7,031 nt of DNA from Zygophlyctis sp. KS116. Taxonomy: Eukaryota > Fungi > Chytridiomycota. The notes under the pieces are model-generated. The model made no database searches and was not told the DNA's origin. It worked only from the letters and a program-made list of their open reading frames with translations. The number at the start of each line of letters is the position of its first letter. Within the stretch, counting starts at the first letter, position 1. This document shows, in pieces, positions 369 to 6,845 of the stretch. The translations under genes were made by a program, and so were the position numbers. Where the stretch lies: contig BAAFSQ010000420.1 in the NCBI GenBank assembly GCA_054661495.1, forward strand, positions 1-7,031, written 5' to 3'.

Positions 369-836
369 TTATTGTAAAAGATGATTGGCTAAAATCGTAT
401 CCATTTTCTGTTTCATTTTCTCCAGCAAATGTTTACTCATATCATTCTCTACAGCCAGTTCTAGAGACACTTTCTGATTCTCCTTTTCCAACTCTATCAT
501 TTCATCTAATTGCTCCTGTTTAGTCATTTGTATTCCTGGTAAGTTTTCAATCAGGAATTCAATTCTCTTTGAAGTCTCCAACAGATCGCTTGTTACAACT
601 TTTACAAAATTCTGAGTTGAATCTTTACTTTTCTGTAAATCTTGAGCTGATCAAGTTATAATAAAGCAATTACCAGTCCAATGCGTTACTGGAACCTGCG
701 GGTCAATGGCTTCTAATGGGGCATCTCTCTGTAGTACTCCAACAGCAGTATAAAATATTTCCAGCAACTTTCTAGTCAGTCGATGGAATAATACCTTGTC
801 TAAATGATCTTGAAGTTGCGACAGACGATCAGTCAT
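369..836 (-). CDS. MED21: Mediator of RNA polymerase II transcription subunit 21 (Med21/Srb7), 137 aa, 3 exons: complement(join(369..646,674..767,795..836))
   Basis: ATG 836. Spliced product MTDRLSQLQDHLDK-LLEIFYTAVGVLQRDAPL...DLLETSKRIEFLIENLPGI...EQLDEMIELEKEN matches the Med21 hallmarks (MxDRLTQLQ; I..LI.sLPG; C-terminal coiled coil). Introns are 768..794 (27 nt, GTATTA..CTGAC..AAG) and 647..673 (27 nt, GTAATT..CAG, contains in-frame TGA). Exon total is 414 nt. Confidence 0.93.
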
Positions 837-921
837 TCTTCTCCTAACCAGCAAACTTGGACACTTTCATGGACACTTGATATCTCATTGAAATAATTCA
901 GAGGAAAAAGTATATGCTTTT

Positions 922-1821
922 TTAATAAAATGTTCCATGTGATCCATTCATCGTTGGATTATTCAACATTTGACCATTTTCTAGATTTTCTTCTTCTTTT
1001 TTGACCTTGTCTAGATTTTCTAATTCCATTTTAATGATTTCCAGCTTATTCTTCAAAATTTCAAGTCCTTCAGAGATTACATCAGGTGGTGGAATAGCCC
1101 CTGTAGTTTCTACATTAAAGTAAAATGCTTCTGGAACCGCTAAAGGATCATAATCTTCTGGATTTCCTTGATCTTCCCATGCCGCTGCTTGTGATGCTGG
1201 CCATTCTTTTTTAATATCATCTTCATACCAATAAGTAGTATGTCTCAATTTATTATGAGGATCGTATTCAAACCCAACAGCAGAGACTGGAGACCATTTT
1301 GCATGTTCCTTTCCAAATCCTTTTTTAGCAATACAATTCAACTTTATTTCCTTTTTTATTTAACAAAATATTGCAAATAGTACCTGATTTGTGCCTAATT
1401 TAGCGATTAAAATGCCATACTGATCTTCAGCCCCAAAAGCCTTTACATATTCCCCAGAGAGAGTCAAATCTTTTGAAGTGACTTCTCTTTTCCTTTCATT
1501 CTGAGCACATTTTACATCCAAATTAATTATTTCAGAGCAACCAGAACAGTAACTGTCACAGCTACAATCGCTTGTATACATCATTTGTTTAATATGATCT
1601 GGGTTCATCTTTAGCGGTATAAGACCCATTCTATGTGAGATAAATTCATCAGTCAAGACTGAAGTATTATTTTCAATTTCCACCAAATCTATAGCTACAG
1701 TAGGAACCTCTGCAATCATTATTCTTCTGAGTGCATTTGCCAGTGACATATCTGCATTTTTGAGAGTAAAAGCGATAGAGTCTTCCTTTAGATCTCTAAT
1801 GATGATTTCTGGGTTTGGCAT
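922..1821 (-). CDS. RPB3: DNA-directed RNA polymerase II subunit RPB3 (POLR2C), 288 aa, 2 exons: complement(join(922..1350,1384..1821))
   Basis: SLANALRRIMIAEVPTVAID, NTSVLTDEFISHRMGLIPL, zinc site CSCDSYCSGC (CxCxxxCxxC, typical of Rpb3), KLGTNQ|EIKLNCIAKKGFGKEHAKWSPVSAVGFEYDPHNKLRHT. A 33-nt intron at 1351..1383 (GTACTA..AAG, in-frame TAA) joins the two ORFs. Confidence 0.97.
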
Positions 1822-2001
1822 TTCCTCTATAGGGCTGTGCTCAAGACTTGGGTCTACTAATGCTCTAGAACTCTTACTGGGGAGGGCCGAAAAAATGCCT
1901 GGTATTGCGCCAGCAAGTCAACAAGTGTAATCAGTGCTGATCAGAGGGCTTTGGACGCGCAAGTGGCTTCGAAAACGGTAAATTTGACCTTATCAAAAAA
2001 A
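1822..2001. promoter_or_regulatory. Short divergent (bidirectional) promoter region between RPB3 and the mucin-TM-SH3 gene
   Basis: 180 nt between head-to-head ATGs (1821 on -, 2002 on +). It is visibly more GC-rich than flanking introns. Position-based inference; no TSS data. Confidence 0.6.
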
Positions 2002-3147
2002 ATGAGCACAAGCACGATAGTAATAGTTGTTCGACCCACTACCTCTATAGTTGAACCGCCCCAGTCGTCTACATTGCCCCCTCCTGTTACTTCTTCACAA
2101 CCACCTTCAACATCACCTGTTGTAATTCCAACTGAGCCACCGTCATCATCTGGCTCTACAATTACACAAATCATTGTCCCCATCACTACATCAAATTCAC
2201 CAATCTTACCTGTAACTAGTAGTAGTAGTACAACCTCAAGTACAACTGCAAGGAATATAGTGTCTAGTATCCTTGCGTCTTCTGTTACTGTTGGATCTAG
2301 CACTACCATGTCTGCAACTATTTGTAATTATTATTTTTTAAAAATCTTAGCTCCCACTCCCACTAAAGCTGATGCATCTCCAAGTGAGAGTGGTACTTCT
2401 CCAGTACTGGTGACCACCATCTCGGTAGTGGTCGGTGGAATACTTTTGGCTCTTTTGGCTGCTTGGCTGATTCACACTCTTATAAAGTCTAGAAGAGAGA
2501 AAAAGGAAAATGATCGGCTAGCAGCGGATGAAGATTTGGATGGAATGTTTCAGGCTCCTGTTATGGGTAGTATATCTAGTGGTAGAAGTATGTATGATCA
2601 TAATGAATCTTTTTGGGATCAGAAAAATCAAGATAATCGACTTTCTATTGTTTCTGTGGATAATTTAGATTATTCTAGACAATCTCCGGAATCGGATGGT
2701 AATTTTATATCGGGATCGCAAGATTCTGAAGATCACGGAGGGCCAGAATCTAGCTTGCAAGCAAACAGCAATGTAGAAGCCCTGGAAGTAGCTGCTGTTT
2801 CTGGAGCTGCTGTTGCTGGAACAGAATTATCTCGACAAGTGACTATGGGATCCACTTCTACCACTCCTCTAATTCCGAATGCACCTACTGGTGGCAATTT
2901 TGTGAGGGTAAACAAAAGTTCAAATTTATTTGTTAGGTTATTAGCGATTACGTTGCTGTCAGGCCAGATGAGCTGAATATGAGACAAGGGCAGATTCTTA
3001 TGTTAGAGCAAACTTTCCAAGATGGTATTCTTTTCTAGAACTGATAATTTAGGCTGGGCGTATGGAAAAAATATCACTACGCAGGAGCGTGGAATGTTCC
3101 CATTCAACTTTGTTGCGTCTGTAGATCCGTCATTATTCCAGCGTTAA
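2002..3147 (+). CDS. Ser/Thr/Pro-rich single-pass membrane protein with C-terminal SH3 domain (Fus1-like architecture), ~353 aa: join(2002..2323,2351..2907,2937..3024,3053..3147)
   Basis: ATG 2002 lies in an A-rich context, followed by a mucin-like S/T/P stalk. The hydrophobic TM VLVTTISVVVGGILLALLAAWLIHTLI (2404..2484) is followed by KSRREKK (positive-inside). The spliced C-terminus FVRVISDYVAVRPDELNMRQGQILMLEQTFQDGWAYGKNITTQERGMFPFNFV is an SH3 (xDY, DEL, GW, GxFPxNFV). Introns are 2324..2350 (27), 2908..2936 (29) and 3025..3052 (28). Stop is TAA 3145-3147. The start is uncertain (upstream ATG 1895). Confidence 0.88.
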
Positions 3148-3273: not shown

Positions 3274-6200
3274 ATGACAGAAGCGAAAGACTCACTTGTT
3301 CTTGAAGATTATTCAGTAGTAGATGAATCTGACGAGCTTTCTAAACTGAATGAGTTGAATTCAACTTTCAAACAAAATTTGGTGGATCGAATGGCCCAGC
3401 AGTTCTCTATATCTATTCTCGAAGAGGCTCTAAAGGCAGCATCTCTAAGAGCTGAAATCAATCAAGTTTCTCATGAAAATGTCCCTCGTTCAGTTGATCT
3501 TGATAATCTTAAGCTTGAGGAAAGTGGGGAATATCTGCCATTAAATCCCAAAACTGAAATAAAGACAGCAGATATGCCTCAAAAAATCCAACAGAAAATT
3601 TCGAATAATCAAGTTGTTGTTTATCATCCCCAATCCGTATTTCCTTTCTCTAATGGTGTAAATTTTATCTTACGGTCGGACACATCAACTTCTCAGCGGC
3701 CTCAACAGAATATAGCCAGTCCTTCAAATAATTCTGTAAAACATTCCTATTCAAAATTAATCTCTGATTCAGACCAAATTTCTCAAGCTATACAGACACC
3801 AAATTTAGAACAGCCAGCTCTAGATATTCAACAAATACAATTGACTACTATTCAAACTGATCCAGAAATGAACAAAGCTATGAAGGAATCGGATCATTAC
3901 TATTCCGAATCACAAATTAATACTGAAAATCCGGCCGTCGAGCATAAAGTATCAGAAGATTCCCCTTCTGAAAAAAATACTATAAATATTTCACAAGAAC
4001 ACTTTAATCAAAAATCAATCCAAAGCTTAGAGACATTAGATAGGAATTCGCAGAAAGACAACTTCTTACATATGGTAGTAAACCCTGATCATTCAATCCC
4101 TACAAATCAGGGTAATGCATCACAATCATGTGAAATATATCCAGCCGAAAGGTTGCAATACAAAGAGAACGCTGTTCCCGTGAAAAGCTCATTAAATCAA
4201 CATCAAATCTCAGAAATAATGCACTCAGATTCTAATTCAAAGAAAAAAAGAAGATCAGAGGAAATTAGTCACGAAAGTCCATCAGAACATCCTCCTGTAA
4301 CAAAAAATAATGAGAGGGAGATTAAAGGTCATAAAAGAAAAAGTGACTCAGCAAAGTTTAAAGTATCCCAGGCTTGGGATATACAAGATTCTGCCAGTAA
4401 AAATGAGTCAAAACATATGAATCTTTTGAATTCAACCAGCAACAAGGTATTTATCTCTGCATGCCATTAATTTTAGAGCTTTTTTAATTCGGAAATTTTA
4501 GATTCTATAGGTAACAACTCACCGAGCCCAAACAAGCCAAAAAAGAATAGGCGTCGTTCTGCTACTCAACCTTCGATCAACCCGCATCAGGAAGCCGCAA
4601 TTATTTACGAACGTCAGTCAAAGGTTTTTGAAGTTTCCACACACGATCGCCTTAGCGCCTTTGATTCTTCTCCTGTACAAAAAAACGTCATTCCAAACTC
4701 AAGACATCTAGAAAAAGATAGGCTTACATGTATTCATGCACTCGGAATACTGGAAAATGTTGATCGTAAGTGGAAAATTTACTTAAATTAGTATCTCGAC
4801 TAAACAAAATTACTTACTTGTGCAATCGGCTACTTAATGGAAGCGCTTGTATTTTAAGTATAGTCGACCTTGATCGAGTCATATGGATCTCATCTCACTG
4901 GTCCGTAAGTTCCAAATACAATGTAGGAGAAGAGCCACGGTATATTTTTCTCTTTAAAGGCATTTAGATATGAATCTTTCTGCTCATGGGTTGTGCAGGA
5001 TGATACTGGTAGAGGAGTAACAGTCATGGATGCTCGCACTGATCCACGATGCACTCATATGCGCTTCAAGCCAAATTTTGAATTCTATGCCGGAGTTCCT
5101 TTGGTCACCAGTGATGGTATCAGAATCGGGGCTCTAAGTATTAGAGGCCCATCTCGTACACAATTTAGTACCATGGATATGAACTTGATGCATGAGTTGA
5201 GTACGTGGGCGATTGGAGAAATAGAAATGATATCATTGAGGCGTGATTTAGAATTGCGGGAGTTGATGCAACGTGCAAGAGCAAAGATTGGAAGAATAAT
5301 TGATGCTGAAAATGAAGTTGAAAAGGGGCTTGGTCACGTGGTTGTTGAAAATGTATTTGAATTCAATTAATCATAGATTTTAAGCCTGATCCGTGAATCT
5401 TTGAGAGCTACAGCTGTCGTGCTAATCAGAATAGTTCCAGAGAACGATCGGTAAGGTTTTCAAAATAAAAAGTTAGCTTTAGATCAATATGTCATTCAGT
5501 ATCATCATCTATCACTGGTTGTATTCTCAAATCTGGAGATGAAGCTTTCCATGAACTAACAGCACAAACTCTAAAAAAGGAATTAAATTCATCCACTCTA
5601 GCATTAGATCCTCTTCCTTCTGGGATACAGATTGAAGTTGATAAATATTTGAGTAAAAGTATCTTTCGTTCTGCAAGTGAAATAATTTTTTCGTTCGGTC
5701 AGCCAGTTGGTATTTTAATTGCCTTTATAGACGGTGCTTACCGCACAATTTCACCGCAGGTAATCCTTTTCTATTCATGTAAGGATTCACAGTTTCTTGC
5801 TGCGTCTGCAAATGCGCTATCATCTTTGTGGGTAAAGATGGAAACGTTGGAATCGTTTAGACAGGCTCAATGTATGTCGAAGCTGGTATCTGCTGCAATT
5901 AAAAGATATTCAGTGAGTGTTGGGGATCGTATGAACGGATTGACACCTTGTGTTCTTATCGCTGAACCTGTCTTTGCCGAAAAAAATCCTAACTCTCCGG
6001 AACTTCAAAGAAGAGAGAACAAAAAAGGAGAAGCCAAAGGAGAAGCTAATGCAAAAAGAATTCTAGACATGAATACAATTGACACTGTGATTGGATCTGA
6101 TCGAGCGCGCGATCTGATCAAATCATTCCCAAATAGTGACAAATTTATTGCAGAAAACACACAGACACCACTCTCTCCTAATGAAATAGTCCTGATTGTA

Positions 6201-6845
6201 GCCGACTTACAACAGATGCTGGATGTTCTGACTGATAGATTTGGTTTGCGGCGGGCAAAGAAATTTGGAAACATGGTAAGTCTAATTTAAATAATTTTTA
6301 GTTCTGTAAGCAATTATAAATATTGATCTCAAGTTTTGATATGTAACATAGGTCCAGATACTGGTTCTCCTGAAAATGCAGCAAATATCGCTCATCAGCT
6401 TTTCTTTAGTTTGGATATTTATCGACAGAAAACCAAAAGAAATTTTCAAGCTAGAGTAGGCATCCATTCGGATTTTGTTCGTAGCTCAACAGAAGATATT
6501 GATGTTCATAATCAATGGTCCTTAATGTGTATGTTTAATTTTTTTAATTGTCTAGTGAATACAGCGCATAAGTTGGTAAGCTTTCATTTAATGAATAATT
6601 AGGAAATATGCAGTGAAAATATTTTGGTGTCTGATTTCTTCTATTCAATTTCAAAAGATAAATGTACATACGAGCCTTCAAAATGCATATTCGTGAGAGG
6701 GCAGGGTTCTATAAACACTTATAAATTGATAGGTGTATCAGAGTCTGTCACTGAGGACAAACATACAGTCAAGACTTATAGTGCATCAGAATCGAACGGA
6801 TTGGTGGAAGTAAAAGGACGGAAGAAAAAATGCAACATATTATAA
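3274..6845 (+). CDS. Tandem-GAF, degenerate class III adenylyl/guanylyl cyclase-like protein with polybasic CaaX tail, ~1101 aa, 11 exons: join(3274..4446,4477..4765,4792..4939,4968..5352,5377..5450,5477..5759,5784..6275,6302..6305,6334..6528,6556..6575,6603..6845)
   Basis: Ten GT-AG introns (30,26,28,24,26,24,26,28,27,27 nt) join six ORF fragments into a 3306-nt stop-free frame. GAF-A: EKDRL..IHALGILE..RLNKITYLCNRL...LSIVDLDRVIW...PRYESFC...DARTDPR...FYAGVPLVTSDGIRIGALSI. GAF-B: ILSLIRESLRATAVVL...GQPVGILIAF...ISPQDSQFLAASANAL. Cyclase: SPNEIV..QQMLDVLTDRFGLRRAKKFGN, RVGIHS, W....NTAHKLE, ILVS, IFVRGQGSINTYKL. Ends KGRKKKCNIL*. The acceptor at 5476 versus 5482 is ambiguous (both in frame). 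Confidence 0.85.
6302..6305 (+). other. 4-nt micro-exon (TTCT) between a 26-nt and a 28-nt intron
   Basis: ATG|GTAAGT..TTTTAG|TTCT|GTAAGC..TCTCAAG|TTTTG. Inclusion gives GNM-FF-LICN, aligning to cyclase GD-A-YM-VVSG. Skipping gives ATG TTT TGA. Confidence 0.8.

Follow-up and report, generated by a model that had tools for sequence, protein, structure and literature searches.

Closest described systems

Among the closest described systems are the cyanobacterial CyaB1 and CyaB2, in which tandem GAF domains precede a catalytic domain (GAF-GAF-PAS-class IIIb adenylyl cyclase (AC)), and PDE6, the photoreceptor phosphodiesterase (PDE) with the layout GAF-GAF-PDE-CaaX (PMC3355970). Here, we describe a gene in a 7,031-nucleotide stretch of the chytrid Zygophlyctis sp. 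KS116 (contig BAAFSQ010000420.1, the whole stretch being referred to below as the window), which encodes a protein combining a low-complexity N-terminus, two GAF domains (GAF1 and GAF2), a class IIIa cyclase-fold domain predicted to be catalytically dead and a C-terminal CaaX box.

With CyaB, this protein shares the placement of a GAF tandem ahead of a class III cyclase domain, with a fold match to 1ykd (all structural statements refer to the ortholog of Batrachochytrium dendrobatidis (Bd), folded with a 35-row alignment). However, CyaB is an active homodimer with cAMP-binding GAFs of the NKFDE type, a PAS domain and no CaaX box, whereas the window protein has no NKFDE motif, no PAS domain in the Bd model and a class IIIa-type domain that is apparently dead. 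PDE6 likewise has a tandem GAF, a C-terminal enzyme fold and a CaaX anchor, but this fold is a different one, the enzyme is active, its GAFs bind cGMP and there is no sequence kinship; no match to the PDEase_I domain (PF00233) was found at this locus. The analogy with PDE6 and CyaB drawn in an earlier, sequence-only reading of this DNA thus holds for layout but not for GAF type, since NKFDE is absent and the nearest solved relative is DcsBIS (PA2771).

GCY-35 and GCY-36 of C. elegans are soluble class IIIa cyclases whose C-terminal isoprenylation signal is needed for ciliary localisation (PMC3192831). They offer the same combination of sensor, soluble class IIIa cyclase and C-terminal isoprenylation signal, but their sensors are H-NOX/PAS, and they are GTP-specific and catalytically competent as heterodimers. 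The beta2 subunit of soluble guanylyl cyclase (sGC) and Drosophila Gyc-89D are reportedly, alongside these two, atypical soluble guanylyl cyclases. NeoR/RGC heterodimers of Chytridiales and the C2 half of transmembrane adenylyl cyclases (tmAC) also have class IIIa domains with one degenerate half-site, and RhGC and AC9 are the best sequence matches; however, these proteins are membrane-spanning, and NeoR keeps the aspartates and loses the Asn/Arg, which is the reverse of the window protein. CcNeoR4 is a dead cyclase, yet a rhodopsin (PMC10622942). DcsBIS resembles GAF1 in its SFC, DPR and FYAGxP motifs and degenerate NKFDE, but is a bacterial protein in which one GAF alone is joined to an active GGDEF domain. 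Neither the RA-LRR-PP2C domains of Cyr1 nor the rhodopsin domain of CyclOp was found by Pfam in the orthologs, and no transmembrane (TM) helices are predicted. Judged by sequence and predicted structure, the protein does not fit the active class III cyclases, CyaB, GAF-PDEs, Cyr1 or CyclOp. By analogy, it may be likened to the sensor-plus-degenerate-cyclase subunits of sGC or NeoR, anchored in the manner of PDE6 or GCY-36.

In a full-text literature search, whose coverage leaves out most subscription papers, we found no description of the family, its architecture, pseudo-cyclase kin or ortholog accessions, and the orthologs carry automatic names only in GenBank and UniProt (hypothetical, 'GAF domain-containing' or 'Guanylate cyclase domain-containing'). 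The suggestion that the combination of parts is unprecedented stands to that extent, but the joining of a cyclase to an isoprenylation signal has its precedent in GCY-36 (PMC3192831).

One conserved gene

Reading 3274-6845 in three frames reveals short GT/AG-bounded interruptions, and manual splicing of ten GT-AG introns, all 24-30 nt long (4447-6602), yields a 3306-nt coding sequence for 1101 amino acids (aa) with no internal stop, which ends at 6845 in KGRKKKCNIL-stop. Nine of these introns (2-10) match in codon and phase (488/1, 537/2, 666/0, 690/2, 785/0, 949/0, 950/1, 1015/1 and 1022/0) those of annotated orthologs (Globomyces, Boothiomyces, Phlyctochytrium or Rhizoclosmatium) or of the metagenomic loci L006 and L002, a recurrence that supports introns 6 and 9, which are in frame and stop-free. 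Intron 1 is in frame with a stop inside, and its reality is weakly supported by a similar junction in Gorgonomyces. The frame depends on a microexon, which is likewise 4 nt long in L006 and L002; replacing it by one single intron was rejected, because the frame is lost. Counterpart introns are shorter in Boothiomyces and L002 (19-22 nt) and longer in Chytridiales (45-85 nt).

RNA contigs, all from one freshwater metatranscriptome run (the single run containing the window stretch), cover 4662-4838 (without intron 2), 5012-5162 (identical) and 5839-5989 (6 differences). Of the cDNA confirmation that the sequence-only reading had called for, they provide the splicing of intron 2 but no contig that bridges the GAF and cyclase parts. 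These parts are nevertheless joined, because one open frame (5478-6275) encodes the greater part of GAF2 together with the first half of the cyclase domain, and full-length orthologs are annotated as single proteins, which upholds one gene over separate GAF and cyclase genes. The stretch 3274-6845 is thus confirmed as one real, conserved gene of a Rhizophydiales-like chytrid. That annotation would miss it needs correcting: full-length orthologs are present in GenBank and UniProt, although two ortholog models are merged with a neighbour gene, and metagenome gene calls break the gene into fragments.

The cyclase-fold domain

The class III cyclase fold read from the sequence was borne out by the family. 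Its profile matches AC9, fungal RhGC and Rv1625c-type mycobacterial class IIIa cyclases in the PDB (E 1e-11 to 2e-13), and the Bd core model (pLDDT 83, pTM 0.81), in which GAF1, a long helix, GAF2, a helix and a cyclase fold with a disordered insert follow each other, matches class III cyclases at Z 16-18.5. The Guanylate_cyc match that had been expected was absent when window exons were searched alone by Pfam, and present as PF00211 over cut-off in 5/8 orthologs. Against cyclases of its own genome, the family profile gave E 1.5e-11 for RGC, 5e-6 for a 12-TM cyclase and 0.02-0.15 for the IIIb types (metagenomic and own-genome cyclase pieces being joined with X for local comparison), and the length of the dimer arm matches that of the own-genome class IIIa cyclases. 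An insert of 60-100 aa across the family, which the sequence-only reading did not mention, splits the domain after beta1.

Class III catalysis proceeds by a two-metal mechanism. Asp occurs at neither metal position in any aligned member, and the host's own cyclases keep both. Metal site 2, unambiguously aligned, is N947 (G-N in place of G-D), and the family has N, S, Q, R or C there. Metal site 1 cannot be placed by sequence alignment alone, and there is no conserved Asp in that interval. In the model, E845-P846 ends the only strand before alpha2, which is the basis of the beta1 placement, and structural alignments start 11 residues before E845, just as they start 11 residues before what we take to be the first Asp of Rv1900c and Ma1120. 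This position is E or Q across aligned members. An alternative beta1 with D890 was rejected, this residue being unconserved and disordered in the model. Because both metal-binding Asp are missing from a two-metal enzyme, a homodimer cannot be an active cyclase and the domain is, on alignment and model, a predicted catalytically dead pseudo-cyclase, an option that had already been raised. An active homodimer with unusual metal ligands could invoke the nearly invariant Glu at site 1 (E845, 15/16), but site 2 is never acidic and is even Arg in three members, and after E845 come Pro and a large insert instead of the expected phosphate-binding loop, which makes this explanation scarcely credible.

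The substrate-binding residues have fared differently. The substrate Lys position is K or R in 13/14 aligned members having it, and the transition-state Asn is kept in 14/15 (His in Bd). The transition-state Arg is K1020 in the window and K, Q or H in all others except Bd, which has Arg, and no member has Asn and Arg together. Active enzymes specify the base by Lys+Asp or Glu+Cys; here, the second base residue is N in the window, D in other Rhizophydiales and A, K, N or S in Chytridiales. The domain could on this basis be a C2/beta-type half-site supplying the adenine-binding Lys, Asn and Arg/Lys, with a partner giving the two aspartates, to form a GAF-controlled, lipid-anchored adenylyl cyclase heterodimer. 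K943, W1011 and N1016, and also a basic residue within the xRGQG loop, are indeed kept, the five C2 positions of Bd read K, D, H, R, R, and split active sites are usual in tmAC, sGC and NeoR/RGC (PMC12264004). However, the loss of the Arg outside Bd, the His of Bd itself, the drift of the second base residue and the lack of a free C1-only partner gene among the ten Pfam cyclase matches in the genome (a search that misses degenerate domains, including the window gene) make such a half-site unlikely.

The GAF tandem and the membrane anchor

As had been read from the sequence, a low-complexity N-terminus of about 470 aa (aa 1-465; 59% S/N/Q/E/K/P/D, mean hydropathy -0.95) precedes two helix-linked GAF domains, of which GAF1 is identified by Pfam and profile, and GAF2 and the helix by the predicted Bd structure. 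The N-terminus shows no conservation among orthologs, whose own N-termini are of similar character and 200-700 aa long, and no significant enrichment in protein kinase A sites. GAF1 is the most conserved part of the protein (51-63% to Rhizophydiales, 34-42% to Chytridiales), ahead of the cyclase domain. Pfam and NCBIfam searches with single window exons gave a weak GAF match only (GAF_2, E 2e-4 with exon 4 alone) and genome-wide searches with PF00211 and PF01590 miss this locus, while Pfam GAF exceeds its cut-off in five orthologs. The nearest solved relative of GAF1 is the GAF domain of DcsBIS (E 1.8e-10, Z 22.9). For GAF2, sequence searches gave no match, and the Bd domain (37% identical) is predicted at pLDDT 87.6, with Z 13-15 against many GAF structures. 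Since 40 positions are near-invariant in GAF1, including the invariant Cys542 of the SFC motif, versus 17 in GAF2, GAF1 is the likely place where a ligand or partner binds, and GAF2 may have a structural role.

Could the tandem be a receptor for cAMP/cGMP, as in CyaB1 and PDE2/5/6, or a bilin photoreceptor, as in cyanobacteriochromes? The tandem-GAF layout is compatible with either, PDE, CyaB2 and bilin-binding GAFs are all among the fold matches, and the DPRCxH Cys of members from Rhizophydiales lies close to where bilin is attached. However, NKFDE is found in neither GAF and twice in the positive control, the CyaB1-like cyclase C199 of the same genome; the pocket of the DcsBIS GAF is large and empty, and neither cAMP nor cGMP is bound by it (PMC4937426); the DPRC Cys is Phe in all members from Chytridiales, and a bilin-binding Cys was rejected; and no GAF type stands out from the others by fold Z-score. 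Both options are very unlikely, and judging from their motifs these are not the cyclic-nucleotide-binding GAFs of CyaB or PDE6.

A terminal Cys-x-(V/I/L/M)-(L/M) is shared by all 16 complete C-termini (those of the window, of two metagenomic loci and of 13 database proteins), in 12 different tetrapeptides behind unconserved upstream sequence. The chance of a CaaX end is about 2e-4 per protein, though the sequences are related. In most members, 3-6 basic residues precede the Cys. The Cys of a CaaX box is prenylated, a Leu ending favouring geranylgeranyl and a Met ending farnesyl, and a prenyl group with a basic patch holds a protein on the inner face of the membrane. The host genome has three CaaX/Rab prenyltransferase beta genes and ICMT-family genes, while PDE6-delta (PF05351) was not found in a search that had no working control. 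No TM helix is predicted: over 19 residues, hydropathy peaks at 1.68 (aa 759), in what is a GAF2 beta-hairpin in the Bd model. The conserved CaaX box is thus supported as a predicted prenylation signal, and of the polybasic CNIL tail without TM helix that had been described, only the basicity needs toning down to moderate.

Proposed function

The function that we tentatively put forward, as one that may well be right but to which we would not commit, is that of a prenylated ligand-sensing pseudo-cyclase which, on binding a ligand through GAF1, would modulate or localise an active class IIIa cyclase. GAF tandems are parallel dimers, in which ligand binding is passed down connecting helices. The protein would (i) be tethered to the inner membrane face by CaaX prenylation and its basic patch, (ii) bind through GAF1 a small hydrophobic or thiol-reactive ligand, other than cAMP or cGMP, (iii) thereby reposition its cyclase-like domain and (iv) bind through it an active class IIIa cyclase domain, possibly that of the host 12-TM cyclase or rhodopsin-guanylyl cyclases (rhodopsin-GCs). 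This partner might be damped, sequestered or localised, tuning local cAMP/cGMP of which the protein itself would make none. Chytrid cyclase heterodimers with a degenerate allosteric site are documented (PMC12264004).

Several points weigh against this proposal. The beta4-beta5 dimer arm, which is less conserved than any other part of the cyclase domain, has no conserved column and is helical, not a hairpin, in the Bd model, making a canonical catalytic heterodimer less plausible, and the remodelled arm may, together with the large insert, block canonical head-to-tail pairing. The assignment of E845 to the beta1 metal position comes from the model and not from sequence alignment. Bd lacks CyclOp (PMC9616733) and keeps the gene, and so a rhodopsin-GC is not an obligatory partner and a dedicated role in phototaxis is unlikely. 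Partner, ligand and localisation are each putative. The 'regulatory subunit of a cyclase system' that the sequence-only reading had inferred stays an inference, with a dimer arm that looks remodelled.

These features lend themselves to another explanation, in which the cyclase fold was repurposed as a protein-interaction or dimerisation module and the prenylated GAF sensor has a non-cyclase output, as a scaffold or a receptor for another effector. The remodelled, variable arm and the insert would fit, as would the mostly structural nature of the conserved cyclase residues (GIH, S1031, GxG, DFxQ), the free drift of the catalytic Arg and second base residue, and a conservation of GAF1 that outranks that of the cyclase domain. 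However, members from two orders have kept the substrate Lys and the transition-state Asn, a sign that the old active-site face may be under selection, and a gene for a disordered cyclic-nucleotide-binding protein lies directly upstream in Bd and Gorgonomyces. We consider this explanation rather unlikely, if worth keeping in sight. A bolder version of the pseudo-cyclase proposal, a lipid-anchored tandem-GAF chemoreceptor subunit in which an external cue would drive pairing in trans with a separate cyclase domain, thereby switching local cAMP/cGMP synthesis, is doubtful; to our knowledge, no free-standing 'half-cyclase receptor' is known in fungi.

Family, neighbourhood and cyclic-nucleotide toolkit

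Database searches used single exons as queries, and local comparisons the joined spliced model against fetched sequences. Orthologs were found on the Rhizophydiales side (Terramyces, Boothiomyces, Globomyces, Kappamyces, Gorgonomyces and Homolaphlyctis, as well as Bd (BDEG_26942) and B. salamandrivorans), in Chytridiales (Rhizoclosmatium, with R. globosum ORY49107.1, Obelidium, Chytriomyces, Physocladia, Phlyctochytrium, Irineochytrium and Entophlyctis) and, as a fragment only, in Rhizophlyctidales (Borealophlyctis). These searches, of limited sensitivity for distant kin, gave no named match in other fungi. No locus was confirmed by pattern scans of contigs from metagenomes and prokaryotes, which are not informative about an intron-rich gene, and the ESM Atlas returned generic bacterial GAF-cyclase clusters only. 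One partial model, P0037 (Podochytrium KAJ3061541.1), has a calmodulin-like start and a cyclase piece before the GAFs and is probably a chimeric annotation. In a midpoint-rooted 20-row tree, in which P0093 stood in for Entophlyctis luteolus, Chytridiales and Rhizophydiales split with full support, and the window protein and L006 are sister to the sampled Rhizophydiales. The gene is single copy in the 12.7 Mb host genome and in the family, its tree follows host phylogeny, and intron positions and synteny are conserved, all of which argues for long-term selection.

The order Med21-Rpb3-SH3 membrane protein-GAF/cyclase gene is common to the window and Gorgonomyces haynaldii (L018), and the TM-SH3 gene is upstream in L006 as well (the features are listed in the table). 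In Bd (BDEG_26943) and Gorgonomyces (L018:5001-7484), the gene directly upstream of the ortholog encodes a disordered protein with one cyclic-nucleotide-binding domain, 59% identical between the two; the window, L006, Globomyces and Boothiomyces lack it at the corresponding place. A functional link and plain synteny are both possible. Models from Bd JAM81 and Gorgonomyces in which this domain is fused to the ortholog were rejected as merged neighbours, because the two genes are separate in other annotations of Bd, and because in the DNA of Gorgonomyces a stop precedes the next ATG by about 35 nt.

In line with the proposed function, the genome has a rich cyclic-nucleotide toolkit, with two rhodopsin-GCs, a 12-TM cyclase, FHA-GAF and GAF-GAF-PAS cyclases, six PDE loci and one cyclic-nucleotide-gated-type channel as candidates. 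The rhodopsin-GC pair resembles RGC(b) clusters of Rhizophydiales (PMC10622942). The near identity of the N-terminal PAS parts in two tandem phytochrome genes suggests a recent duplication or gene conversion.

Table. Features of the window (positions in nucleotides) and cyclic-nucleotide and sensor genes elsewhere in the genome (locus:positions)
Feature	Location	Strand	Details
Whole gene	3274-6845	+	11 exons, 10 introns; 1101 aa
Exons 1-6	3274-4446, 4477-4765, 4792-4939, 4968-5352, 5377-5450, 5477-5759	+	
Exons 7-11	5784-6275, 6302-6305, 6334-6528, 6556-6575, 6603-6845	+	
Intron 2	4766-4791	+	26 nt; removed in RNA contig
Microexon	6302-6305	+	4 nt; flanking introns 26 and 28 nt
Low-complexity N-terminus	3274-4698	+	aa 1-465; probably disordered
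GAF1	4711-5232	+	aa 470-625; DcsBIS-type
Long helix, GAF1 to GAF2	5233-5337	+	aa 626-660; helix 144-190 of Bd model
GAF2	5338-5846	+	aa 661-805; divergent, recognised by predicted fold only
Class IIIa cyclase-fold domain	5928-6737	+	aa ~833-1066
Cyclase-domain residues			metal sites E845, N947; K943 (ATP-type), N1009, W1011, N1016, K1020 (for Arg), R1053
Disordered insert after beta1	5979-6176	+	aa 850-915; short KG-x-A-x-A helix motif in most members
Basic tail and CaaX box	6813-6845	+	KGRKKK-CNIL-stop; predicted prenylation site Cys1098
Med21-like gene	369-854	-	
RNA polymerase II Rpb3	922-1880	-	
Ser/Thr-rich single-TM protein	about 2004-3147	+	C-terminal SH3 domain
CyaB1-like GAF-GAF-PAS adenylyl cyclase (C199)	L011:2677-5600	-	two intact NKFDE, intact catalytic residues
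FHA-GAF-adenylyl cyclase (C80)	L010:3976-5962	+	bacterial class IIIb type
Rhodopsin-guanylyl cyclase tandem pair (C71)	L008:4353-8045	-	catalytic residues intact
12-TM two-domain cyclase (C219)	L009:3185-7468	-	domain 1 C2-type residues, domain 2 C1-type aspartates
GAF-GAF-PDE (C109)	L019:1822-4186	-	PDE2/5-like layout, NK motifs; no CaaX at end
Two tandem phytochrome histidine kinase genes (C178)	L020:1138-7658	+	N-terminal PAS parts nearly identical

Significance

Chytrid zoospores steer and encyst via cyclic-nucleotide signalling, of which the rhodopsin cyclases alone have been characterised. A single-copy, long-conserved pseudo-cyclase with a sensor tandem and a Ras-like lipid anchor is a candidate for a light-independent input, retained in the frog pathogen Batrachochytrium, where the light-sensing cyclase is lost. 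Precedent exists for each pair of its parts, and the surprise is therefore moderate, but the protein would be a further class III pseudoenzyme, free-standing and of new domain order, and the GAF1 domain is a eukaryotic handle on the ligand of the DcsBIS-type GAF class. If it were indeed a chemoreceptor subunit, it would be a candidate for zoospore chemosensing or encystment, including in Batrachochytrium.

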